Of a DNA stretch of 64,000 bases, positions 6,037-30,701 are shown piece by piece. The notes under the pieces were generated by a model, which worked only from the letters and a program-made list of their open reading frames with translations, was not told the DNA's origin and ran no database searches. The translations under genes and the position numbers were made by a program. Every line of letters starts with the position of its first letter. Within the stretch, counting starts at the first letter, position 1. The stretch lies in assembly GCA_025594325.1 (NCBI GenBank), contig JANHCV010000009.1, positions 1,054,001 through 1,118,000 on the forward strand, read 5' to 3'. The DNA is from Blastocladiella emersonii ATCC 22665 (lineage: Eukaryota > Fungi > Blastocladiomycota).

Positions 6037-6854
6037 GGTCGCACGATAACCTGAATGCAGCAAGTTTAAGCAAACGAATTACATTAGCTTCAGGGTAGTG
6101 AGGTCGCTGGGAGGGCGGCAACTTCGGTGCGCCCGAGAACAGGGGCACCGGATGGGTGTTCATGTCCGCGACACGCTTGATCAAGCCACTCCGAGCATCA
6201 CATGATTTCCCGACGCGTCTCTCGACCATAGTCCCGCGAAAGGGCCCTCGCGGCTTCGCTTTTGAAGATGAAGTGGTATGCGAGTATAGTGCTCATTTAT
6301 TGCAGAGTTATTCATCAGCATTAGGGCTGAGCGCTTGCACGGCCAAGGTCCTCTATGCGTTTAGCTGCTGTAAAATCCCCAAGCTTCTGGAGAAGAGCTC
6401 CGAGGCGTTCACGGCGAGACCCCAGTCGCCCGAGCGCTTCAGCGAAGGGACGAGCTTGTTCACGGGTGAGTGTGACTGGCCTTGAGCCTGAGCCATGCAA
6501 AAGTGGGAGCAGTGGTTGGATGTTGACGTAGTCGTTCGCCATTTCGGCAGCAAGCTCCTGAATCTCTCGGTGAACGAGACGCATCTGTACTGAAAGAGGT
6601 ACTGGCTCGCGTCGGCAAACCTTTTTGGAATCGTGCGAGTTGGGTGGTGAGCCGGGTCGCTTGACGTGCTGCGAGGGGTAGCCCGAGTTGTGCTCGGCCG
6701 TGGTTAAGTGTACAAGTGGTTTCAGTGGAGCTGAAAGGTTTGTTCTCTTGAAAGGAGAGTGCGAGGCAACCCTTTATAGCCCGGACTTGGCGGCGGATCG
6801 AGCTTGAGTGTGGAGGCGTGCATACATGCATTCAATGCACTCCAACCTTTTTAA

Positions 6855-7011
6855 GGGTCCGTTTGGTTCGAGGTTAGCTGGATCAGCTGAATCAATCCTG
6901 AGCAAAATGCACGGGGTGAAGTTGCCACATTTCAACTGGCTGAACACGGGACAGTGTAAAATCGATTGATCCAGCTGATCCAGCTGATCCAGCCGGGAAC
7001 CAAACGGACCC
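6855..7011. mobile_element. 157-bp Tourist-like (PIF/Harbinger) MITE
   Basis: Perfect 15-bp TIRs GGGTCCGTTTGGTTC (6855-6869) and GAACCAAACGGACCC (6997-7011), flanked by TAA (6852-6854 and 7012-7014). Subterminal AGCTGGATC repeats extend the inverted symmetry. No coding capacity. Confidence 0.9.
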
Positions 7012-7202
7012 TAAGTCTCGGTGGATGCGTTAACGAGCTTACGAACGTGCCCGCAAGACAGGACCTGCATTGTCGACTGGTCTTCAAAAAAACCTGCTCC
7101 CTTGAACGTAAAGCTGCTCCTCTACCACGCCCACAACTTCACTTCAAGTGCGCCTTGATCCCGTCCATCGAAAACGGCGCTCACTAACTGCGCCAGATAC
7201 CA

Positions 7203-8176: not shown

Positions 8177-10519
8177 TCATGGTGCAAATTGGCCGAAGGT
8201 TACTGCAAACTCGTGGGACGCAACGGTAATCGGTGCGATCTTGCGCATCACCTCCATCGGATCGTTCCCAGCTTCTGCGTCTGATGGTGCCCTGAGTTGA
8301 CGCGCGACGAAGCCAATCCAAGCTGTATCTCGGACCCCGTCTAACCGGCCCTCGGGGATCAGCGCCCACAAGGCGGGTTCAGCTGAATGCCAGGTGTAAA
8401 GCAGGTGATCAACAACAGAGTCCATGTCGGCAGTGAGCAAGATCTGAAGGGTCTTGAGTGATGCTGTCAGTCGACTCTCGGAGCTTGAGCGCGACGTGAT
8501 GGTACAGCACTGTCGACGTTCATTCCCACTAAACGCGGACTTGACTAATTTGTTGACCGAGCTTGCGAGCATCGGGACGCGTTTAAGCGATGGGAGAAGT
8601 GAAGCTAGCTGAGAAACGGTCGTGTACCACGCCTCCTGCAAGTCCAAGTCGCACTGTGAACAGGTTCTTCCTGCGTCCCCAACTTTGAAGTCGTGTTTAC
8701 CCACTTTGCCCGTAACTTGTGCGTGAAGCATCGCGCCAAGGAAAGCAGGAGCTGATGAACTTCGATCAAGGACTTGGAGGGTAAAGCTGCTCAAGGACGG
8801 ATTTCTGAGCATCGCGACAGGGATCCAAACCAGCGAATCGCATGACGCCCCCTTGCGACGAGTAACAAGTAAGCATGCGAGTACAAACGGACCGCGCAAG
8901 TCGGGACTGCGAGTCAGGGTAAAGACGCGGGCAATTCGTTGCGAAACCACAGCGGGACCCCAGCGGAGGTCCTCGTGAAGCGTCACATGCGCGAATCGTT
9001 CAGCAAGAGTGGGAAACGAAGGCTTCAGGTGCTGGTAAGCGAAGATGACGACGTTCGTTGCGGAATCGTTTGCGCGACCGAGTGAGCTGCTGGGCCAGTA
9101 GAAGGCCGACTCGAACGCTACAGTTGAGGATTGCAATTGTCAGTCAACCGCATACTGGGCGCTTAAGTAATTCGTACCTCCAACGACGACATCGTCGATG
9201 TCCTCGCCTGCCGTTTCAATGATGAGCGATCGGCAAGTCGCATGAAAGTTAGGTTGGGCAGGACTCTGTCCCTCTTGCAACGTGTGCAAGTACAGCTCGG
9301 AAAGGCCCCAAGTGTCAAGGCAATCCTTGTCGATGAGAAGTCGAAAGGTGGCGGCGTCGTTGAGCGAGGCGGCGGGTCGCTCGCTGTCAAGGATGGACGC
9401 CAGAAAGGCCCGTCCATCTGAAGTGGGTTGACCAACGACAATGGCGGGGCACGACTGCATCGCGTAACCGAGGAGATCAAGTGTGCCGAAGCCAGCGAGC
9501 GCTCCGAACGTTTCGAGGCCGCGCCCGGGTGCGGCTGCCGAAGACATCCAGCCACGACCGCGATTGAACAGGCAACCCAGCATATCTTTAGCCTCAGCTA
9601 GAGTGGTTCGCTCCAGGGTGCATTGGCGGAGAAAAACCGCGCGATGCTGCGTCAGGACTTTGGCAAAGCTTGGCATGATGATCCCAAAGCTCCGTTTGAG
9701 TAGCACGCGGAACACGCTGCCGCGCCATCGAAATGCAGCGAGTAGGGCCAGGAAGTCAATGAGCGTAAGTTGGACAGTGTTCAGGGGATCGGTCGTGTCC
9801 GTATCAAGGCGATACTGCTCCACGCCAACCGCCCACTGCGGAGCGGCAACAAGGCGAATCCATCGATCAAAGTAGCCACGAATCTGCAAGACTTGAGGCG
9901 CAAGCCGTTGGACTTGATACAACATTTCGAGCAAGGACGGCGCGTCGGGTTGATTTGTCGCGAGCACAAGCAATTGGCAGAGTGAAAAAGTCGGGAAGTA
10001 ACGGACCGGGATACGCAAGGTGTACTCGCTTCGCCCGCGCTCTAACAGGAACGCGTTTCGAAACCCGATCTCATCCTCGACCTCGTACTCTGCGGGAAGC
10101 TGCGACGGTTTCCGGATGTAGTACAAGATGCGTTCGAGCAGGAGGAAGAGGAGGTCAACGGGCAGGTCGACGTTACCGGCCCCGTGTTGGCGCTGGTGTG
10201 GCTCTCGAGCCAGCCCGACAAAAAGGAAAAATGCGAGAAGCTCGGTGCCAACTTCGACGCTGCTGCGGCTGTGGTTGCAGATATAGCCGCTATGAAACAC
10301 GGGCATCGTGCGAAGGACGATGTCGAGCCACACCAGTTGGACGCGTCGGCTGCGCGCGCTTCCCACAAGGCAGCCAGTCGCTGAGCACACAAAGGTACGC
10401 GGGGAGACTAGCTGCAAGACGAGTTCCGCGATCTCGGTCGGGATTTCGGCGAGCGTCAAGCTGTGTTCTCGAACATCAAGTTGCATCAAGTCCATAGATT
10501 CATTCAGGTGTTGCTCCAT
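8177..10519 (-). CDS. F-box-like lineage-specific protein, paralog B (~760 aa, two exons)
   Basis: ORFs 9140..10519 and 8177..9136 are in one frame. The separating TGA lies in a 60-nt intron 9177..9118 (GTACGA...CTGAC...TGTAG). F-box-like N-terminus, CxxC in exon 2, homologous to paralog A. Confidence 0.75.
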
Positions 10520-10582: not shown

Positions 10583-10607
10583 ATCACATGATTGATCGAC
10601 GCGTCTC
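10583..10607 (-). promoter_or_regulatory. ACGCGTCGA-N5-CANGTGA composite upstream element
   Basis: 25 nt identical to 21150-21174 and 22300-22324, about 65 nt upstream of the paralog B ATG and oriented with transcription. Related copies at 2334, 44315, 47117 and 51480. Confidence 0.6.
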
Positions 10608-10947
10608 GCGCTGTTCGCTCCGCGTCGGCTCCGCCTCCGTTAAGGCTAGTCCAACCCTGTAGTTTGTGTGGATGCGTTTGTGCGCAATTCTTACGATCAC
10701 TGCTGAGCTCCCGACTTGGGTGGAGCACGGAGCCTACTGAGTTCGTCAGCGAACGCCTGCGGGTCGAGAAACGCGTCCCTTCACAACCACATGTTTTGAT
10801 CAACGCAGATCGCTGCGAGATGCGACAGGTGTCGTCTCTTTCGCTCTGGTTACGCTTACACGGCAAGCACTCGGCTTGATTCATGTCCGCAAAACCGGAT
10901 CCCCTATTACAATCGAATAACCTCGCACAATTCCACAACCTCGCCTC

Positions 10948-18635: not shown

Positions 18636-20232
18636 ATGCGCTCCACCCTCTCCGCCATCCTCGCCACCCTGGCCGTGGTCTCGCTCGCCAACCTCGCCGC
18701 CGCTGCCGAGGCCGGCACCAAGTCGTGGACCTACGAGGGCGCCAACGGTGCGTTCCTGCACCTCCGACATCATCACCGAGCCGATCGCTCACATCTCTCC
18801 CCTCCCCTCCTCCAGGCCCGCTGCGGTGGGACTCGCTCAACCCGGCGTACGAAAAGTGCGGCAAGGGCAAGCTGCAGTCGCCAGTGTCGTTCAACGCGAC
18901 GGCCGACCTGCGCACCTCGGGCTTCCCGACCCTGTCGCTGCCGCCCGTCAGCCAGTTCAACCTCACCAACCTCGGCCACACGATCCTCTTTGCGCCGGCC
19001 GACGACCGCACCGCCATGCGCACCCTCGCCATCGGCGCCAACACGTACAACCTCAAGCAGTTCCACAGTACGTTTTCTTATCGTGCTGCTGCCGCCGCCG
19101 TCGCGTCGCGTGGGTGGTGAGCGCGGTGACGCGTCGTCGCGCGCGTGGCAGTGTCTCCCGCCTGCCTTCTCGGCGCGGCCGGCCTGCCTCGATCATGCAT
19201 CACATCACCGCCGCGAGCGCGCGCTCTCGATCACTTTTCGACAGCGACTCAAGCTCAAACTCAAACTCACTTCCACTTTCACGCGCCCCACCTCCACCTT
19301 CACAGTCCACACGCCGTCCGAGCACCACCTCGGCAAGCAGTACTACGACGCCGAGATGCACTTTGTGCACGCGACGCCCGACGGCAAGCTGGCCGTGGTC
19401 GGCGTGTTCGTCGAGGCGTCGGACCGCGTCGACCGCCGCTGGTCGCGCGTCCTCGAGACCATCCCCGACGAGGACGAGACTGCCATGATCCGCGCCTTCC
19501 TCGACACGTCCGAGATCGTGTCGCTGACCCAGCGCGGGTACTACTCGTACACGGGCTCGCTCACGGTACGTCCTGCTTACTATATCTCCTTGTTGTTGTG
19601 GTTCGGGATCGTCGGCTGTTGTCGTGCGGGGTGGAGCGGGCTTGGCGTGTCATGCGGACCCGGATCCGCGGAAGCTCGCTGCGACGAAGCAACGCGTCGC
19701 GCGTGTCCGGCGCGGCCGCTGAGCCACGCCGGCCGTCGGATTCGGTCCCGCACCACGCGCTTCCGCTGCCGCGCCTCACGTCATCTCCCTCTGCCCCTCC
19801 GATCATCACGCGTGCCCCCCACCCGATTTGCCGGATCAACTTTTTTCCTGCCCGTCCTGCACGGGCTTGCCGCTTCACCTCCCGCTACGCGATAAATACC
19901 TTATCACTCACTCACACCTCTCACACCCTCTCGCCCGCACTCAGACCCCGCCGTGCACCGAGGGCGTGTCGTGGTTCGTGGCCGCGACCCCGCTGCGCAT
20001 GTCGGACCGCCAGATCCGCCGCATCAAGTCCGTCATCGGCAACTCGGCCCGCCCGACCATGTACAACGAGGACCTCGAGGCACGCCGCGTCAACGGGACC
20101 TCGTCCGCCGCCGCCAAGAGCCTCAAGGACGGCGACGTCGCGGCCATGTCGGTCGAGACCAGCGGCTCGGGCGCGCTCCGGCCCGCGGCCGGCGTCGTCG
20201 CGCTCGCGGCTGTCGCGGCGATGCTCGCGTAA
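18636..20232 (+). CDS. alpha-class carbonic anhydrase, secreted and probably GPI-anchored
   Basis: Signal peptide MRSTLSAILATLAVVSLA, WTYEG, QSPV, zinc ligands QFH|IH...SEH...EMHFVH, SLT|TPPCTEGVSWFV, and a Ser/Gly spacer with hydrophobic C-terminus. Introns 18748..18815, 19068..19305, 19566..19944. Confidence 0.9.
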
Positions 20233-21147
20233 GCGGGTAGGTGGAGGGGATTAGGTTTTGGGTGACGGTGGATCGCATAGCGTAGATGTATTGCATTAGC
20301 TTAGCAACTGTATGTCTGTCTCTCCGCAAGGAGATCCTGCGGGTCGCGGTGCGCGATGGATTCGACGGGGACCCGCTCGCGGCGATCTACCTTGCACCTG
20401 GACTTGGCCACGCGGCGCACGTATCCGACGGGATCTGGCCCATGGCAAGAAGCGGCCGCATCGTTGACTGCACAATCACGCGCGAGGCATACTCGATGCT
20501 GTGCGACGCGAGCCCTTCCGTGCTACCGTTGCGCCGCTGGAGCTCGTCCGCAACACCACAGTGGGACAGCCCTCGAGCTCGGCCGCGAGTTTGAGTTCCG
20601 TCGTCGTCCGCGGTTGGAGCGCGCCGACCTTGAAGCGGTTCCGTTTGATGAGAGACAACGTGTCAAGTCGATTACGATGAGAAGCGGCGGCAGCGTGGCG
20701 TTGCTGTAGCGCAACGCGTCCCCGATCGTCTCGAGAGCGCGGCGTTCACGGCCTCGCACTCACGGGTCTCGGGTAACAAGAGACTCCGGAAAGAGCAAGA
20801 CGCTCACTTCGTTGCTTTTGGTGGATGTCTGGTCATCGCCGTTGGCAGATGCTGATCCAACTAGTTGTTTCTCACCACCGATCTCCAGACATGGCCAATC
20901 ACCGCAGCGGTGCCAGGCAAGCCCTCTACGCTGTAAGCTGCGATGGGGACGCGAACAACATGTTCGGGCTCTCGGGGCTCGTTCGAGTGCCTGTCGGACA
21001 TGGCGCGCGGCGACGAGTCACTCCTTTCGCAGCTGTCCATGATTGATAGCGCGCAGCCGGATGAAATGATGCTCTCGACGCTCTCGATCTACAGCGGCAA
21101 CGGCGAAAAACGCTACCGGCGCCGAGGCCCAGGCCGAGGCCATCGCC

Positions 21148-22050
21148 GAGAGACGCGTCGATCAATCATGTGATCGGGGCCGCGAATGCGCCACTTTCGA
21201 GTCTCGCGGTCGCGTCGCTTCTTCGCTCCCCCACCCGACCTGTACTCCGCCATGTATTCCTAGTCCATGCATAGACTTGCGGCAATGTTTTATACTTGAT
21301 TGGATGTCCTGGGTACATTCGCTACGACGCTTGGTTCGATTCGCCTGGAGAAAGGCTGACTACACCATTTTCCCTGCGATCCTTATAGGAAATGCCAAAT
21401 CACGAACCCAATCCAGACTTCTTCCGCTGCAGGGCAAACCCTCCTGAGGGCGAATACGATGTGTGGCCGGGACTTGGTGAGGTAACCACATGGTGAGCGC
21501 GTGGTACGTTATCATCTTCTGAAGCAGTGCTTGATTCGCATCACGCTCAGCCGTACTAATCTCGTCTTACGCCAGGTATTCGCAGATGTTGACGACTGCT
21601 ACAACTCCAGACTCCAGCACTTCCCGCATTTTCTGTTCAAGCTTGAGTGTCTCACTCGAGCGCGTCGATCCCAGCGAGACTGCGGCATCCACGGTCTCGT
21701 ACTTTTTAGCATCCACCACTCCCGAGCGAGAGCAGCTCCTCACACTAGCTCATCATCGCACTCGATTTATTCTTCTGCAAGCATCAACCCAGTGCGTGCC
21801 CTCAATTCGAGGCTGGCAGCGTGAGTCGCGACTTGTGGGTGACGTGCGTCATTGCATTCGTTCTCGCTGATCCGCGCGACTTCGTCCCTCACCTGGAATC
21901 GGTTCCTGTAGCTGGGCTCAGCTTATAGGCCCCGCACAGGCACTCGCAGGACGCGAGACGATCACGCTGCGGGCCTTGGCGAGGCTCCGCTTTGTGGGCC
22001 CGCACCTCTCGTTGCTGCTGCGAAAGTGTCGTCTGAAGTGAGTTGCGTTC
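21148..22050 (+). ncRNA. putative spliced non-coding unit 1 with 3' long hairpin
   Basis: Upstream composite element and AGACTTGCGGCAA at 21273. Intron-like segments at ~21313..21388, ~21504..21575 and 21844..21911. No recognisable ORF. The hairpin 21808..21978 is homologous to unit 2. Confidence 0.5.
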
Positions 22051-22297
22051 ATACACTCGATGCCTTGACTCAATTTTCTATCAATGACACCACCGGTGTT
22101 GCCAAAATCCTTGTGGACAGCAACGCGGCGACCGCTCAGGTCACTCAGCTCTGCTTGAATCGAACGGGAGCCTTGTCCGCGTTCGCTGCGACCTGAAGAG
22201 GAGGAATCAGTTGGCAACCTGTACGACCGTCGCAAGCCTGACAGTAGTGCAGGCTGCCTGCGCCGAGACATCGTGTCTTTCGCGACAGGGGCGAGGC

Positions 22298-23400
22298 GAG
22301 AGACGCGTCGATCAATCATGTGATCGGGGCGCCGGTGTGGCGCACTCTCGTCTCGCGTTCGCGCGGCGCCGCATCTCCGCTCCCTCACCCACCCCCCTAC
22401 TCGACCATGCAACCTTAGATCATGAATAGACTTGCTGCAAAATATGAATCCAGCTTGGCGATCTCGAAGTCGTCGAGGCGCGAGGACCGGCCTGCACAAT
22501 GTTTTCGTCACGCCGGCGCGCAGTTTTCGCTCCATGCCTTGAGCGGACGGCGCGGGTCACCGGAAGGCTAGTCTTAGTCGTTTGGGCAAGATTTTGTGTG
22601 CTCGAATGCCATGCATCCCGTACATGGGTCTCATCTCGTGGATGCACTGCTTCTGGGCTACCCGGACGACTGAGCCCGGTTTGTCTCCGACGACTTGTAC
22701 GCCACCTCGACACCCATGCGTCGATTTACTGACGCGCCTATGTTCGCACCGGTTAGGGATACACCGCGCTGAACGTGAAGCTCACTCGCGAGCAGTTTGG
22801 CGATACCCCCGGCTCCTTAACTCGAAATGGTCGCTTCGCCATGCAACGGCTGCAACTTTTGACTCTCAGCACTCGTGCTGGCGTTCACGAGACCCCTCGA
22901 ACTGAACGCTTGGCTCTCGGTCGCACCCGTGGTCTCTTGGGCCGATTTTCAAACTCGCACTATGCTGCCATCATCGGCAGCGCATGACCATACCTCACGT
23001 AGTACGTATCGAGGCTGTTGTCCGTTGCGCTCGTGGAAGGCTCGTAATCTGACTACGACGACGTAGCGCATCGCTTAGCTATCACTTCCTGTCCTCGTTA
23101 TCCTCATGCCACGCGGTCCACGGCGATTCGCTTCTACCCGCTGTACGCCCTCAACTCGGACCCTGGTCGAGGCCGGCAGCGTGAGTCGCGGCTCGCGGGT
23201 GACGTACGTGTTCAGCGTGTTCTCAGCCTTCAATCATGGCTGACCCGTCCTCCGCGCACGCGTAGCTCGGCTCAGCCTATAGGCCCCGTCGAGGCACCCG
23301 CGCTGTCCGCGAGCCGATCACGCTGCCGTCCTTGGCGAGGCCCCGCCTTGCGGGCGCGCACCAGTGCGAACGCACCGCCGCGAACGCGTCGTCGTCGTGA
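22298..23400 (+). ncRNA. putative spliced non-coding unit 2 with 3' long hairpin
   Basis: 34-nt upstream identity with unit 1 and AGACTTGCTGCAA at 22428. Intron-like segments at ~22698..22757, ~23002..23078 and 23204..23265. Conserved hairpin block 23167..23362 with compensatory changes. Confidence 0.5.
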
Positions 23401-23436
23401 GGAATGGAATGAGTTGCGTATAAATGCGTGAGTGCG

Positions 23437-24893
23437 TTATTTCAAAATCAACCGGCCCATGGCGAGGTAGATGGAGATGCCGACCACATCCTGCACGGCC
23501 GTTTCTACACGCAAGGGTGTTGGTGAGTGGTGGGAGCGGAGGGTGAGGGGGTCCGTCGAAAGCAGCGTACCGAGTGGTCCCGCGCACAGCGCAGGGTCAA
23601 AACCGAGCCGCTTGAAGAAGATGGGCGCGAGCGAGCCGAGGATGCCGGCCGCGGACGCCGAAAGCATGATGCTGAGGCCCGAGACTACGATCGCACGCGT
23701 AGAGGATGTCAGTACTACGACGCGAGCGAAGCGACCAAATAGAGCGTACCGAGACCGGTGCGTAAGCTGTTGGTCCACAACGCAATGACGCCCGTGAGCC
23801 CAGCGAGGAGGAGGATACCGAGACAGAACGCGGACGTGAACTCGCGCCAGAGCACCTTCGAAATACTCTTCCAGCTAGTATGCGACGCGTGCCCGGTCGC
23901 CAGCGCGCGCAACGTGCTTGTGGACGCCTGGAGCCCAATATTCCCGCAGATACTCGAGACCATGGGCATGAAGTTAACGAGCACGACAAACTTCTCGAGC
24001 ACGTCGCTGAAGGTGCCGACCATGGCGCCGACGCCCATCTCGAGGACCACCGTCAGCATGATGGCGGGCAGGCGGCGCACGGCGAGCGCCCACGGCGACA
24101 TCTTGCCGAGCCGCCCCGCGTCGTCGTCGCGCAGCAGCTTCTGCACGCGCGCGCCCACCAGCAGGTGCATGTCGTGCCGCGTCAGGCCCGGGTCCAGCAT
24201 CGACTGCAGGAACTCGAGCTCCGTCAGCGTCGCGGCCGCGTGCGCCGCACTCGCCGGTGTCAGGTCGCCGTACCCGTGCGCGCCCGCGGCCGCCGCGAAC
24301 GTCGACGCGAACGATCCAGACACTTTGGGCGAGCCCGGACGGCTATGCCCGCCGTACGACGAGAGCAGCGACGGCTCGCGCGACGCCCCCGCAATCGACC
24401 CGCCGCCGGGCGCGAGCCCCGTGCCCGCCGACGCCACGGACGCGGACCGGTACGACGTCGCGGGCGACGGCGCGCGCACCTGCAGGCGGAACGGCGCGTG
24501 CGGCACGTCGGCGTGCAGCGACCCGGAGCGCGACCCGCGCGCTGCTGCTGCGGTGGCGCCGCCGCCGTTTGGGCGGTGTGGCGAGGGACCACCGCCCAGG
24601 AGCAGGTCGCTGTCACCCTCCCCGCGTGCGTCATCGTCATCATCATCGTCATCCAGGTCGAGCAGCAGCGGCGACGTGCTGAGCGATCCCATGGCAATCG
24701 CCTCGAACTCGGGCGGCGCGTCGCTCGCCCCCGCCGCGCCGAGTGGCGGTCGCAGGCGCGTTGCTGGTGGTGACCGCGACCGAGACTGCGAGCGGAGGCG
24801 CAGGAAGCTGGTGCCGTTGTGCGCGGCGGCGGCAGAGGGGCCGTCGAGGTCGTCGTAGGGCATGCCGTTCGTTGTGGCGCGGTGTTGATGCAT
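23437..24893 (-). CDS. MgtE/SLC41-type divalent cation transporter (membrane domain plus disordered N-terminus)
   Basis: RRLPAIMLTV, GNIGLQASTSTLRALATG and DPALCAGPL|ETAVQD are MgtE transmembrane signatures. Two GTACGC introns near the 3' end. Start uncertain (24893, 24863, or 25115). Confidence 0.8.
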
Positions 24894-25461
24894 GGGGGCC
24901 GGGGGTTCCGAGCCAGCGGAGCGGGAAGGGAGTTGCAGCAAGCTAGCTTCGTGTGCGAGAGGGATTGCGGGAGGAGAGTAGGGAGGGCGGGGAGAAGGGA
25001 GGGAGGGAGCGGGCGCGGGAGGGGTGGCACAGGCGGCGAAGGCGGCGAAGGCGCGCGGCCGCGAGGCGCGAGACGCCGCGCCGATCGCTGCTCTCACGCT
25101 CTGAAGGCGGTGCACTCGATGTCTGTGCTCAGCTCTCAGTGATCTGGTGCTCTAGGAGTGCTTACGGTCGTGCTCATGGCCATCTCAACTGTGCGGGGGT
25201 CGGCGTTGTCGGGGCCGCGCAAGGGGGACCCGCTGCCGCTGCGAGGGCAGATGGGCTTCACGGTCAGCCCCCACACATCGGCCAAGCGGTCGCCCAGCGA
25301 GCGATCTCGTTGGGCGGGAAGTGCGTTCAGCCCTCGACGAGGGAGTGGGCAAGCGGGATGGAGGGGTGTCGAGTCCACGGCGAGCGAGCGGGCGGGCGGG
25401 CGATAGCAGTTACGAGTACATTTCAAAAGGAAGGGGTACGAGATCATGGCACAGGCCCACA

Positions 25462-25909
25462 TTACGCCTTGTGCGAGTAGGGCATGAGGCGGTGCAGCGT
25501 CCGGGTCATGGCCTTGCCGTAGGGCTCGGCCATGGCGCTCAGGCGGTTGAACCGGCTGCTCGACATGCCCTGGTTGAGATGCGACTACACACACGATGCG
25601 GAGTTAGATCACACGCCGGTATCGTAACAAACGAACCGACAACGCACCTTGTTGACCTTCATGCGCTTGAACTCGCGGTCGTTGCCAACGGCGAGCCAGC
25701 GCTTGGCCGTGCCCTTGTGCGTCTTGAGCTTGTACTTGGACAGCGACCGCACGGGCGTCGCGAACGGCGTCCATGCTACTCTCCGCCCACAGAACAGCGA
25801 TCAGTTCCATGGTCCCCAATCTCCGAGTTCAGTGGGACCCACCTGGCGCGCGGGCCACCGACACGACCGACCGCAGCGACGACGAGATGGAGGACAGGAG
25901 GCTGCTCAT
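25462..25909 (-). CDS. MRPL35: mitochondrial ribosomal protein bL35m
   Basis: Introns 25842..25776 and 25647..25585 give a Ser/Arg-rich presequence followed by KYKLKTHKGTAKRWLAVGNDREFKRMKVNK|SHLNQGMSSSRFNRL, the L35 signature. Not captured by the ORF track. Confidence 0.85.
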
Positions 25910-26143
25910 GACGTGCGTTGCACCAGGTTAGGGTTGATTCGTGGCAGTGGTGGTGGCGTAGCAAGGAGCGGCGATTCCACGTAAAGCGTGAGGCAAAACC
26001 GATTTCATTGCAACGCAGCCTCCACCTGATGAAACGTGATGTCTCCAACCCCGCGAGACGCGTCGGCCGCGCGACGCGTTCGTTTCACCGCGCGCAATCG
26101 GCCCTCCCTCTCTTCCTCGCCCCTTGGAACCACCTCCGCCGCC

Positions 26144-27490
26144 ATGAACGCAGAAGACGATGCAGTCACCGACCTGTCGGCCTCGGCCACCGTGACCGCC
26201 GCCAGCAGCGGCGGCGCGCGCGGCCTGCTCAAGTCCAAGTCCAAGAGCTTCTCCAACATGTCGTTCGGCCAGAAGCAGCACATCCTCAAGGCCATGTTCG
26301 ACAAGCGCAACGGCGTCCCGCCGCCCAAGCAGGACCCGCCGCGCCGCGCCAAGATGCCGCCCCCGCCCCCGCCTCCCCCACCGCCCATGGCGGGCGACGA
26401 CGAGGACGATGACTACGAGGACGAGACGCCCGAGGACGCCGCTGCGGCATCCGCCGCCAAGAAGTCGGCCGCGCAGCCGATTCAGCAGCTCCCGCGCCGC
26501 CCGCCCTCCCCGCGCCGCATGTCCAAGTCGCCGCTCAGCCAGTCGGTCGCCGAGGACGCGCCGCCGCCCGCGCCGCCGTCGGGCAAGACGGGCATCCCGC
26601 TCTCGCCGTCCAAGAACCAGGAACTCAACAACAGTGGCCGCCTGTCGCCGCTCGAGCAGCGCGCGCTCGAGAAGGAGGGCGTGGCGCGGCGCCGGTCCAA
26701 CTTCGAGGACCGTGGCGCACCATCCACTGAGCGCCGCACCAGCGGCAGCGAAGAGGGCGGCGCGCTGTCCGTCTCGCGCTCGTCGCGCCGCACGTGCCGG
26801 TCGACGCCGCCCGGCCCGTCCATCAGCGTGCAGCTCCCGTCGCCGAGCGAGTACGCGCACCCGCCACAGCCTCAGTTCCAGCACCACCCGCAGCTCGTGT
26901 ACCAGGCTGCGCCAGCCCCCACGCCGCCCATCGTCGCCGGCCCGTCGGACCAGCTCTTCAAGCAGACCGTGTTGTCGTTCGAGCAATGCCTCCACCACGC
27001 CATGGACATGAACACGATGCTCCTGCAGCACCTCGCGCGCGGGTCCGCCGCCGCGACAACGGCGGTCGCGGCGACTCCCGCGGCGGCACGCACGGTTTCC
27101 GCGCCCATCGTGTTCCCCTCGTTGCACCACCACCACCCACACTTCTCGCACGCCGGCTCGCCCGGCCACGGCGCCAAGTCCCCGACGTGCAACTACTGCC
27201 ACGCACCGCCGCTACCCGCGCCGAAACCCGTGGCAGCCGCGGTACCGCGCCGCTCTGAGTCATCGCGCGCAGAAGACGCAACCAACTACGCGCGCGGCGT
27301 GCAGCGGCTGCAGGACCTGGTCGCGCTCGTCCGCGCCAACACCCAGCGCCAAGCCAAGGTCATGGCCGGGCTCCAGGAGCAGGCGTGCGCCGAGCAGCAC
27401 CGTCGCGCGCAGCGCGAGGTCGATGGGCTCGTTCAGCTGCTGGCCACCGGCGGGGGTGGTGGAGCGGGGAAGCGCGGGCATGGGATGTAG
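26144..27490 (+). CDS. hypothetical, largely disordered protein with C-terminal coiled coil
   Basis: Long intronless ORF with coding-like codon bias, ATG in GCCGCCATG context, and Pro/Ser-rich composition. Confidence 0.65.
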   Translation: MNAEDDAVTDLSASATVTAASSGGARGLLKSKSKSFSNMSFGQKQHILKAMFDKRNGVPPPKQDPPRRAKMPPPPPPPPPPMAGDDEDDDYEDETPEDAAAASAAKKSAAQPIQQLPRRPPSPRRMSKSPLSQSVAEDAPPPAPPSGKTGIPLSPSKNQELNNSGRLSPLEQRALEKEGVARRRSNFEDRGAPSTERRTSGSEEGGALSVSRSSRRTCRSTPPGPSISVQLPSPSEYAHPPQPQFQHHPQLVYQAAPAPTPPIVAGPSDQLFKQTVLSFEQCLHHAMDMNTMLLQHLARGSAAATTAVAATPAAARTVSAPIVFPSLHHHHPHFSHAGSPGHGAKSPTCNYCHAPPLPAPKPVAAAVPRRSESSRAEDATNYARGVQRLQDLVALVRANTQRQAKVMAGLQEQACAEQHRRAQREVDGLVQLLATGGGGGAGKRGHGM

Positions 27491-27672
27491 ATGGGATGAA
27501 TACATGCGACTGGGTTGAGCGGTCGAGGATTGTGAAGGGTGAGGCGAGGCCGGGGAAGCGATGAGTGTATTCGTGCAATCCGACCCGTTCCAGCGTGATC
27601 ATGGCCACCAACTGCACCGTGTCCGAGTCTCGGGCAGCCGTCCAGCACCGCGGTGCTACTTGATTGTACAAA

Positions 27673-27729
27673 GGGCCGCACTCGCGCGGACAGCGCGGTC
27701 TTTTCACGGCGTCCGCGCGAGTGCGGCTC
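27673..27729. repeat. conserved hairpin copy A (19-bp stem, 19-nt loop)
   Basis: GGGCCGCACTCGCGCGGAC pairs with GTCCGCGCGAGTGCGGCTC. Paralog of 28893..28949. Confidence 0.8.
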
Positions 27730-28892
27730 AACAACGCGGAGCCGGGCGGCGGTCCGGGGGTGCCTATAAGCACGTTCGCGGCTCGAACCGAACGTCGCGA
27801 GGTCCCGTTCCGAGCGGTACAGGATTCCAAGCGGTCAATGTGCGAAGTTGAAGCGTCAGCCAAACATAAACGAATGTGCTCGCCCGCAGCCAATGGTAGC
27901 GACGAGTAGCCTCACGACGAACGCCGCAGTGTTGCCCGATGCGTGTGTAAACCTCGAAATCATCGAGGTGCAACGCGGTGGCCAGGGTGTAGCACGCTGA
28001 ACGAACTTGATCCTGGAGCATGACCAAGGCGATTAGCAGCAGAGTAGCGAGTGGCTTTTGACCGGTGGAACAGCGGAGAGGTTGATACGATGGCAACGAG
28101 GCGAGTCCATGTCGCTTCCACCGGTATGCGCATGGTCCATTGCTTACGGCGAATGCGACGGTGCATAGGCTGCGCCCATTCGCGCCTTGGAGATCTCTCT
28201 GCGGTTTTACACGTTCATCACTGGAACAGTTTGCGACTAGCTGTGTGAGTCGGACACAATTTGGACACGTCGAGAACGTCTTTTTCGCCTATCATCATGC
28301 ACTACACAACGCGCATCGTGCAGGACGCCCTCATGTTCGCCAGGTCGTACTGGGCAAACGTGTGTGAGCAGTCGCCAAGGGAAAGCGTAGAGCATAATCG
28401 CCTAGATTAACCAGCATTCCGGGATCCGGGCTACTTCAACCGCTTGAAGCGGGACATGCAAGCCGAGAGTGGCGCGTCAAACATGAGCAAGCGCCGGCTG
28501 GGCGCGAACGGTGGCGAGCCAAAGTGGCGGCGCGCCAAGTTTTCCAGAGGTAATACAAAGCGTCGAAGCCATAAAATCTATTGCAGCAAGTCTTGATACA
28601 TGGCGATGCGTGTGTACATGGTTGTCTAGTGGGTCGAGGGAGCGAGAACGGGTCGCGGGCGCAGAGCGGCTGAAACAGTCACGCCGTCGCGACGCGGAGT
28701 TCATCTCGCTTGCACGCGCGTCCGACGAGCGAACCTTCTCGACCCGCTCGACGTCGCAAGCGGAAGGCACAAGACTTAAACATGTATTCGACGCGAATCA
28801 TAACTTCCCGTAACCTCGATCGCCTGCAACCGCGGCACACTTGCGCCCCGCTCCATCGCACTCCGCTCCGCGCTGCGACGCGAATGTACCAA

Positions 28893-28949
28893 GGGCTGCA
28901 CTCGCGCGGGCGGCGCGGTCTTTTCACGGCGCCCGCGCGAGTACGGCCC
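28893..28949. repeat. conserved hairpin copy B
   Basis: GGGCTGCACTCGCGCGGGC / GCCCGCGCGAGTACGGCCC. The loop matches copy A at 18 of 19 nt, and there is a compensatory A-T to G-C change in the stem. Confidence 0.8.
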
Positions 28950-29843
28950 AGCAGCGCAGAGCCACGCGACGGGCGAGGCGGCCATGGCCGTAAGATCGCT
29001 GCACAACCAATGCTGCAAGGTTCGAGTCTTGAAGGCGCACGATGACGCGCTGCTCACTGGCAAGCAATCGAGACGGGATACGGAAGAATGGCGGCAAAGT
29101 AATGGGCAAAATGACTAGTGCGCGTGGCGCGACCAAAGACGACGGTCTACGCGCGGCGAGACCTGAGCGTCGCGAAGGCAGCAGCTCGACCCAGCTTGGC
29201 GCGGCCGCTGTAGAACGCCGATGGTTCGGGAAGTTGCGGTTTCAGCATGCGTCTGAGCGAGATCTGCGCCCCGTGCGACCCGTCGTTCATCTGGATCCCC
29301 ACCACGCGCATTTGACCAGTGCGTCTTGAATTGTGCGTTGCACGGCATGAACGTGATGATGGTCATGCCGCCCGAAGCACGGGAAAGTGGTCCGACCGTG
29401 CTCGTAGTCCAGCGCGTGACGGGTGCTACTCAGCGACAGAACGAGCACTGGTGAGCAGGAGCCCCGTGGGGGAATAGGGTGGCCGCATCATACCGTACAC
29501 AATGTCATGAGCACCTTGCTACCTGATAAGCCCGATCCCACACGGTCGTCGTGGCGCGGGAACACTTCTTGCAGCGCATGTCGTGTTTGGGCGCCGCGAG
29601 TCGAGCAAGCCGGTTCCGCGCGACGGTGAGACACACGATGGACGCGCCCCGCCGACTGCGAGCGCGAGCCGGGGCGGCCGCCCAAGGACGTGCAGGTCGA
29701 CGGCCGCCGGCGCCAGAGACGCGAAGTGGGAGGAAGTTGCAAGGGGAACGATTGAAGTGGGGTCGTAAGGGAGCGAGAATCGAGCGCGACCGACGCGCGG
29801 CATTTTCACAGCAGCGCGGCTAGCTCCAGTCGGTGCAGCAAGT

Positions 29844-30701
29844 CTAAGCTCTCCGTTGTATGGGTCGCGACATGATCTCGTACGGTTCGTCGAGCGGGTT
29901 GCCGTCGTCGTCGACGTAGTTGCTGGGCGAGATGCCGTCAATGGCGAAGCCGAGGCGGCGGTAGAAGGCGATGGCCGCCGTGTTGACTACGTCGTTCGTC
30001 AGCACCGCTCTTCAACCAGACCGATCGAAGAAGACGGAGCGTACCCTTGTACACGGTGAGCATAAGCTTCTCCATCTTATTCTCGCGGCCCACGGCGTCC
30101 GCGACGCGCACGAGGAACGCGCCGAGTCCGCGGCCCTGGAACGCGGCGCGCACCTGGACCTCGTACAGGTAGCCGACGGGCACCTCCCAGTCAAAGTCCG
30201 GGTGGTCGTCGGTCGAGAACTGGAACATGAGGAGCGCGGCGACGTGCGAGGTCGCGCGGTCCGTCAGCACCAGGAACCGCTGCTCGGGCGCGTCCATGTC
30301 GCGGCGCTTGTTGGCGTCGTCCCACTGCTCAGCCTCGTCGTAGATGGGCTCCATGTTCTCCTTGACGAGCGCGAACAGGGACTCGAAGAGCGGCGCGGAG
30401 AGGTCCGTGCGACGGTAGAAGGCGAGCGCAAAGTCGTCGCCGTGCCGACTGTTCACGTCCCGCGTCAGCGCACGGTTCGTAACCCCGCAACGTCAAGCGT
30501 ACCGCATCCAGTCGGCGAACCACGGCAGCCGCGAGTACTCGGCCTCGCCGAACGTGAACCGCTGACACGGCCAGCGCGTGCGTCAGCGTCGTGCACCCCT
30601 CACCGTCGTCGCTGCACCCGTACCTCGGTCGCGCGCTCCGCGATCCGGCGCGCCTTGCGCGTCTCCTTGGGCACCTCGTCGCCGCCTTTAGATTGCTCCA
30701 T
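29844..30701 (-). CDS. NAA40: N-alpha-acetyltransferase 40 (Nat4/NatD), GNAT fold
   Basis: LVKENMEPIY...WDDANKRRDM, YLYEVQV...QGRGLG, MEKLMLTVYK|TNTAAIAFYRRLGF, YEIMS. Three introns. Confidence 0.85.

Follow-up and report, generated by a model that had tools for sequence, protein, structure and literature searches.

In the 64,000-nucleotide stretch of Blastocladiella emersonii ATCC 22665 DNA analysed here (contig JANHCV010000009.1 of assembly GCA_025594325.1, positions 1,054,001 to 1,118,000 of the forward strand; hereafter the window), two tandem units each contain a long interrupted hairpin whose 5' strand appears to be split by a short spliceosomal intron. The interpretation that we favour, and which as a whole has in our judgement about an even chance of being right, is that the units are two paralogous, spliced and probably non-coding plus-strand transcripts with their own promoters, which carry an RNA hairpin maintained by selection. 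Almost nothing is known of the regulatory RNAs of zoosporic, early-diverging fungi, and a duplicated unit in which pairing has been kept while the remainder diverged past alignment offers a concrete case of a possible structured non-coding RNA of Blastocladiella that can be tested cheaply.

The hairpins lie in homologous blocks at 21807–22006 and 23167–23362, arranged as head-to-tail tandem copies 1.36 kb apart. The duplication described in the initial annotation of this DNA, made from the sequence alone, is real, with three pieces that are 84–88% identical (21807–21849 and 23167–23209, 88%; 21908–21947 and 23262–23301, 85%; 21945–22006 and 23301–23362, 84%). The surrounding units, at 21147–~22060 and 22297–~23420, may equally well be, or not be, what we take them for, namely two old tandem paralogues that form species-specific plus-strand transcription units. 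Beyond the promoter, the sole part kept between them would be a block of ~270 nt near the 3' end, the rest having diverged past alignment. The stretch that holds the hairpin units has a G+C content of ~60%, compared with 66–72% in local coding DNA, and the NCBI annotation shows no gene in the interval from MgtE to carbonic anhydrase or in the corresponding gap on the opposite flank. The MgtE reading frame itself matches a B. emersonii ATCC 22665 protein at 100% identity. Searches of both units against the 64-kb window with blastn and tblastx returned only each other, plus a short promoter motif elsewhere. The conserved parts of the block, as placed by alignment and fold, are as follows.

21792 to 21843, plus strand: 5' strand of the copy 1 hairpin, with the outer helix GTGCGTGCCC, then CGAGGCTGGCAGCGTGA, TCGCG and CTTGTGGGTG (from the fold).
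21912 to 22006, plus strand: copy 1 inner stem, near-invariant apical loop, 3' strand, small second hairpin and GCACC.
22034 to 22048, plus strand: copy 1 conserved tail TGAAGTGAGTTGCGT, 87% identical to 23405–23419.
23143 to 23203, plus strand: 5' strand of the copy 2 hairpin (from alignment and fold).
23266 to 23362, plus strand: copy 2 inner stem, apical loop, 3' strand, small second hairpin and GCACC.
23405 to 23419, plus strand: copy 2 conserved tail, the counterpart of 22034–22048.

When the intron-like segment is removed, both copies fold into one shared interrupted hairpin of about 45 bp. On the plus strand these segment-less sequences fold at −80.0 kcal/mol for copy 1 (z −5.9) and −87.6 kcal/mol for copy 2 (z −6.1), with z-scores computed against dinucleotide shuffles; the corresponding minus-strand values are −62.1 kcal/mol (z −2.8) and −86.0 kcal/mol (z −5.0), the latter nearly symmetric with the plus strand. 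An invariant duplex of ~16–20 bp is formed by GGCAGCGUGAGUCGCG paired with CGCGAG.CGAUCACGCUGC, and when the fold is extended, each copy gains an outer helix (GTGCGTGCCC with GGGCCCGCAC, and GTACGCCC with GGGCGCGC). No other inverted repeat within 250 nt anywhere in the window is as long as the copy 2 hairpin, and the near-invariant apical loop, CTCAGCYTATAGGCCCC, occurs in the window at only these two places.

The pattern of substitution between the copies is consistent with retention of this pairing. The RNAalifold consensus of the two intron-less copies comprises 46 pairs, of which 38 are unchanged, six carry a one-sided change, two are compensatory (T-A/C-G, and G-C/C-G, the latter amounting to two transversions) and none is broken. 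All six one-sided changes set G-U against G-C on the plus strand, where the other strand would give A-C mismatches. In the consensus fold the copies differ at 10 of 92 paired columns as against 12 of 42 unpaired ones, and sliding the 3' partners by 1–3 columns lowers pairing from 92/92 to 26–44/92 cells. Since a consensus fold cannot hold broken pairs, the count was repeated on the minimum-energy fold of each copy, with the expected number of broken pairs obtained by putting the same 20 substitutions at random positions. Four of the 51 copy 2 pairs are broken in copy 1 (8.3 expected, P 0.007) and three of the 50 copy 1 pairs are broken in copy 2 (8.2 expected, P 0.002). The initial annotation had proposed a common fold after intron removal, a compensatory G-C/C-G swap, G-U pairs valid on the plus strand only and a near-invariant loop, all of which are borne out here, with the T-A/C-G pair as a second compensatory change. 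The evidence for pairing that two sequences can supply is modest but consistent, and pairing of the hairpin in plus-strand RNA looks selected.

The interruption falls at an identical point in both copies, GGGTGAC|..|CT, and the predicted introns of the two units are listed below.

21504 to 21575, plus strand: unit 1 predicted upstream intron, GTACGT..TACTAAT..CAG, 72 nt (pattern scan).
21844 to 21911, plus strand: copy 1 predicted spliceosomal intron within the hairpin, 68 nt, GTGCGT..CTCAC(19)/CTGAT(41)..TGTAG (from its pattern and from verified local introns).
22697 to 22756, plus strand: unit 2 predicted upstream intron, GTACGC..TACTGAC..TTAG, 60 nt (pattern scan).
23002 to 23066, plus strand: unit 2 predicted upstream intron, GTACGT..CTGAC..GTAG, 65 nt (pattern scan).
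23204 to 23265, plus strand: copy 2 predicted spliceosomal intron within the hairpin, 62 nt, GTACGT..CTGAC 22 nt before ..CGTAG (from its pattern and from verified local introns).

Introns of B. emersonii measure 55–333 nt, most of them 60–79 nt (PMC2773782). Those of the neighbouring MgtE gene were verified by a reconstruction whose translation reproduces the annotated protein P0001; they measure 65 and 66 nt, start with GTACGC, carry CTGAC or CTCAC ~20–25 nt before the end and finish with GTAG. Both segments in the hairpins show the same organization, with a GTRCGY donor, a CTRAY branch motif ~15–30 nt before a YAG acceptor and a length in the range of 60–79 nt. Complete patterns, that is, a donor hexamer with a properly spaced branch motif and YAG, number 34 on the plus strand of the window, 10 of them inside the 2.1 kb of the two units, compared with none and one on the minus strand of the units. 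This excess makes the units look like plus-strand spliced transcripts with two or three introns each, and we infer that the predicted introns are removed from the RNA. The segment interiors are 54% identical in a global alignment, which is the background level (52% for the unalignable upstream sequence), so that the initial description of an intron-like interruption with an unalignable interior between conserved flanks (82–88%) stands.

This arrangement of identities bears on the possibility that the similarity of the blocks reflects gene conversion between tandem copies of neutral DNA, with a hairpin that has no function. Tandem copies 1.36 kb apart can swap patches, and the 34-nt promoter block of the units is 100% identical; however, one conversion tract cannot explain a pattern in which the 62–68-nt interior, at the centre of the block, is no more similar than background, and conversion leaves the compensatory changes and the absence of broken pairs unexplained. 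We regard this explanation as very improbable.

The initial annotation went further in proposing that the inner stem forms only after splicing, which would make the structure splicing-gated, and this part is not supported. The unspliced copies fold with z-scores of −3.7 and −3.6 and keep all outer helices; copy 2 also keeps its inner stem and an apical mini-hairpin, while the apex of copy 1 pairs differently. Exon 1 contributes a single nucleotide to the inner stem. What intron removal alters in the predicted folds is the topology, from a three-way junction to one continuous hairpin.

A relation between the helix and the splice sites could also run in the opposite direction, with the hairpin acting in cis as a pre-RNA structure that governs its own splicing or stability, its pairing selecting among splice sites, rather than serving as a source of small RNA. 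The 5' strand holds three hexamers that resemble 5' splice sites (21792, 21821 and 21844 in copy 1; 23143, 23181 and 23204 in copy 2) and the apical region three YAG acceptors (21911, 21921 and 21928; 23265, 23275 and 23282), all of them retained in corresponding places in the two copies. The first two donors are within helices, GUGAGU is part of the invariant duplex and two of the acceptors fall in the invariant 'loop'; use of donor 1 would remove the entire 5' strand. However, the predicted accessibility does not discriminate among the three donors (mean P(paired) 0.78–0.89), and GT[AG]NG[TC] strings are common in DNA as rich in G+C as this. We consider such a cis-acting role unlikely.

Returning to the proposal of two spliced non-coding transcripts, the hairpin copies are situated 0.6–0.9 kb downstream of a motif of 28–34 nt that appears to act as a promoter element, and whose surroundings comprise the following.

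21147 to 21180, plus strand: unit 1 putative bipartite promoter motif, GACGCGTC-N7-CATGTG, in a 34-nt block identical to 22297–22330 (alignment).
21243 to 21285, plus strand: unit 1 conserved promoter-proximal block ATAGACTTGCNGCAA, 77% identical to 22398–22440, a probable start region.
22297 to 22330, plus strand: unit 2 putative bipartite promoter motif, identical to 21147–21180 (alignment).
22398 to 22440, plus strand: unit 2 conserved promoter-proximal block (alignment).

The motif proper covers 28 nt, at 21152–21179 and 22302–22329. These 28 nt recur, sharply delimited at either end, on the minus strand at 10583–10611, ~65 nt upstream of the ATG of an orphan gene at 10519, and a slightly degenerate copy lies at 6197–6224, also on the minus strand, ~160 nt upstream of the ATG (~6034) of a paralogous orphan gene; strings related to the ATAGACTTGCNGCAA block are likewise found at the starts of these two orphan genes. 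All four copies in the window are upstream of a transcription unit and oriented along its transcription, an independent argument for plus-strand transcription of both units. Units 1 and 2 and the orphan genes therefore appear to belong to one putative bipartite-promoter class (GACGCGTC-N7-CAYGTG, ~60–160 nt upstream, in the orientation of transcription). The motif is present in multiple copies in the genome, as the contigs of DNA assemblies (four contig sets from one sample) branch at the block, where depth is elevated and no fewer than four further contexts appear. Scans of metagenomes for the loop string and for the promoter motif gave no match.

The hairpin might instead be a DNA-level single-strand signal of a non-autonomous mobile element, either rolling-circle (Helitron2-like) or foldback, with the 'intron' as a variable insert. 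Conserved 5' and 3' blocks around an unalignable middle are typical of non-autonomous elements, the units are arranged head to tail, and neither strand of the hairpin is favoured when DNA energy parameters are used. The 3' arm of copy 2 matches 14 of 14 nt of a 57-nt hairpin elsewhere in the window (27685–27698), and all four hairpins have the GGCTCCGCNTTGT block, which in units 1 and 2 lies in the tail of the hairpin. The locus is moreover associated with rearrangement. In B. britannica (MU624563.1) a block encoding a 448-residue protein, bL35 and MgtE is syntenic with 23437–27500 of the window and both flanks differ; the next genes there begin within 33 and 63 nt of the syntenic block and are different genes, which leaves no room for the units. 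The hairpin-bearing stretches of B. emersonii sit at both synteny breakpoints, in inverted orientation.

Several properties of the units argue against such an element. The hairpin k-mers of units 1 and 2, unlike the promoter motif, are single-copy in the DNA assemblies, with depth equal to that of the flanks and no contig break, and the promoter motif itself, a self-contained site of 28 nt that ends sharply at either side, is not an element terminus. In both copies the variable insert is equipped with a full set of splice signals at the proper spacing. No terminal inverted repeats or target-site duplication are found, and a miniature inverted-repeat transposable element (MITE) or foldback origin is further opposed by the lack of a duplication at the stem base and by flanks that are co-duplicated and conserved on both sides. 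Helitron2 and Helentron termini have asymmetric terminal inverted repeats, short hairpins and a T-rich insertion site (PMC5148889); here there is no asymmetric terminal inverted repeat or T-rich end, and the hairpin is ~45 bp in 130–200 nt, although the exclusion is of limited strength, as two tandem copies leave the element borders undefined. A mobile-element signal is, on this evidence, quite improbable.

The absence of terminal repeats in the units differs from a Tourist-like MITE of the same window (6854–7012), located between the two orphan genes. Its terminal inverted repeats are perfect over 16 bp (GGGTCCGTTTGGTTC..) and are accompanied by an inner repeat of 22 bp; it is bordered by a TTA duplication, and its fold reaches −78.8 kcal/mol (z −7.2). 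The 57-nt hairpins, at 27673–27730 and 28893–28949, consist of a G+C-rich stem of 17–20 bp with the loop CCGTGAAAAG on the minus strand; the pair lies inside a 108-nt block that is 82% identical and shows one compensatory A-T/G-C change and no strand preference. A four-member family that would unite units 1 and 2 with units 3 and 4 (27490–29880) was rejected, as the latter have only short strings in common with the former and their hairpins are of the separate 57-nt kind.

Comparison with known RNA families agrees with the initial annotation, which had recognized none and had named an Rfam search as a check. Rfam 15 at gathering score yields nothing in the whole window, and up to an E-value of 10 on 20000–25000 it yields only chance-level matches, none on the hairpins, a result slightly weakened by the fact that its models cannot bridge the intron. 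Small nuclear RNA, small nucleolar RNA, signal recognition particle RNA and RNase P/MRP RNA were rejected on the lack of an Rfam match and the species-specific tandem pair, telomerase RNA on the lack of a template-like repeat on the plus strand, and unconventional splicing of the HAC1/XBP1 type on the canonical GT-AG ends.

A number of observations weigh against the proposal of selected non-coding hairpin transcripts. With only two copies to compare, the covariation is based on a small number of events. Of the 11 transitions, eight have T in copy 1 and C in copy 2, and a strand-biased mutation process could yield part of the G-U excess. Formation of the stem, as predicted in the unspliced folds, needs no splicing. 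The syntenic locus of B. britannica lacks any sequence resembling the units, which suggests that at this position they are confined to the B. emersonii lineage. Lastly, unit 1 without the introns 21504–21575 and 21844–21911 contains an open reading frame of 188 codons that runs through the hairpin (21490–22196, plus strand) and is longer than in 99.7% of shuffles (P 0.003), which the proposal leaves unexplained, and the differences between the copies are distributed by codon position as 10, 6 and 2 (a hand count from the alignment; about P 0.07).

This last point is the basis for considering the units as unannotated, fast-evolving, species-specific protein genes, with the hairpin inside coding sequence. 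The 188-codon frame opens only when both predicted introns are removed, six of 10 nucleotide changes are synonymous, by our own reading of the alignment, across the 24 codons over the junction in which the copies have a common frame, and other copies of the promoter motif in the window lie ahead of protein-coding orphans. However, a 2-nt indel in the 3' arm then shifts the frame, as the initial annotation had correctly observed of the shared reading frame, and none of nine donor/acceptor combinations yields matching products on both sides. The N-terminal part of the unit 1 product is without a counterpart in unit 2, several upstream ATGs with short open reading frames precede the 188-codon frame, and its G+C content at third codon positions is 0.57, compared with 0.88 in neighbouring genes and 0.66 in orphan genes. 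A search of the C-terminal 94 residues (exon-3 frame) against 1.84 billion representative proteins found no homologue, with three weak, low-complexity-like matches only, and a hairpin of −80 kcal/mol would hinder translation. The shared frame, homologues and genomic codon bias of a protein gene are thus lacking in the units, and we judge a coding origin to be rather improbable.

If the units are indeed spliced non-coding transcripts, they would be transcribed by RNA polymerase II-type machinery from a start ~100 nt downstream of the bipartite motif, and each would hold two or three short canonical introns and encode no conserved protein. The conserved block of the plus-strand RNA would fold into the long interrupted hairpin of ~45 bp, with the 62–68-nt spliceosomal intron in an internal loop of the 5' strand, so that its removal would convert the three-way junction into a continuous hairpin. 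The spliced hairpin may be a double-stranded RNA substrate, for example a small-RNA precursor like the intron-split microRNAs of plants; alternatively, it may serve a non-coding RNA as a domain for sequence-specific protein binding or for stability. It is from sequence that we infer the transcription and splicing of the units and a role for the spliced hairpin. The overall reading given in the initial annotation thus stands in its duplication, intron-like interruption, conserved hairpin, lack of a shared frame and lack of an Rfam family, and is unsupported in its splicing gate; 'splicing-gated' and 'small-RNA precursor' are conjecture. The promoter motif upstream of the units had escaped the initial annotation.

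In its boldest form the proposal would make the units the first genes for intron-split, microRNA-like precursors outside plants: a Dicer-type substrate would arise only once the canonical intron has been removed from a covarying hairpin of 45 bp, all under the control of a species-specific promoter switch. We hold this to be doubtful. The invariant duplex of ~16–20 bp and the adjoining covarying helix would suit a small-RNA duplex, and no target with complementarity to either arm of at least 18 nt was found within the 64-kb window. Dicer has been reported in Allomyces and was undetected in an incomplete Catenaria proteome, in a survey whose coverage did not extend to B. emersonii (PMC12663654). 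Should splicing and processing be true of the units, intron-split hairpin precursors would extend from two plant lineages to fungi, and splicing, which is inhibited by stress in B. emersonii, would be linked to the production of double-stranded RNA; should the hairpin instead prove to be a signal of a mobile element or orphan coding sequence, it would be ordinary.

Among structures that associate a helix with an intron, the 'zipper' stems of yeast introns bring splice sites together; they lie within long introns and compensate for their length. The B. emersonii hairpin resembles them in that a helix encloses the intron and sets donor and acceptor side by side, but its stem is exonic and much longer than needed for this, and the intron is already of minimal size. 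With the 57-nt hairpins of the same window it has in common G+C-rich stems, covarying pairs, conserved loops and short shared strings; those hairpins, however, are short and have no intron, whereas that of the units is ~130 nt when intron-less, has single-copy k-mers, is interrupted by the predicted intron and has a putative promoter of its own. Fungal microRNA-like RNA (milRNA) and hairpin-RNA loci also present a long imperfect hairpin in a non-coding transcript, here with an invariant duplex of ~20 bp. To our knowledge, none of the milRNA precursors described so far carries an intron within its hairpin, although our search was not exhaustive.

The closest parallel is with plants, as intron-split microRNAs are known only from the monocot miR444 family and the miRtop14 of Solanaceae (PMC11706861). 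In these, as is predicted for the B. emersonii units from their sequence, a polymerase II transcript has an intron between the arms of a long hairpin that becomes continuous only in the spliced RNA, and in both cases the transcripts are non-coding (probably so here) and lineage-restricted. For the plant precursors, experiments established the small RNAs, the RNAs that they target and the requirement for splicing, whereas the fungal units are known as sequence. They differ further in the position of the intron, which in B. emersonii lies in the 5' strand instead of the loop, in a stem that is predicted to form in unspliced RNA as well, and in the host, which here is an early-diverging fungus.

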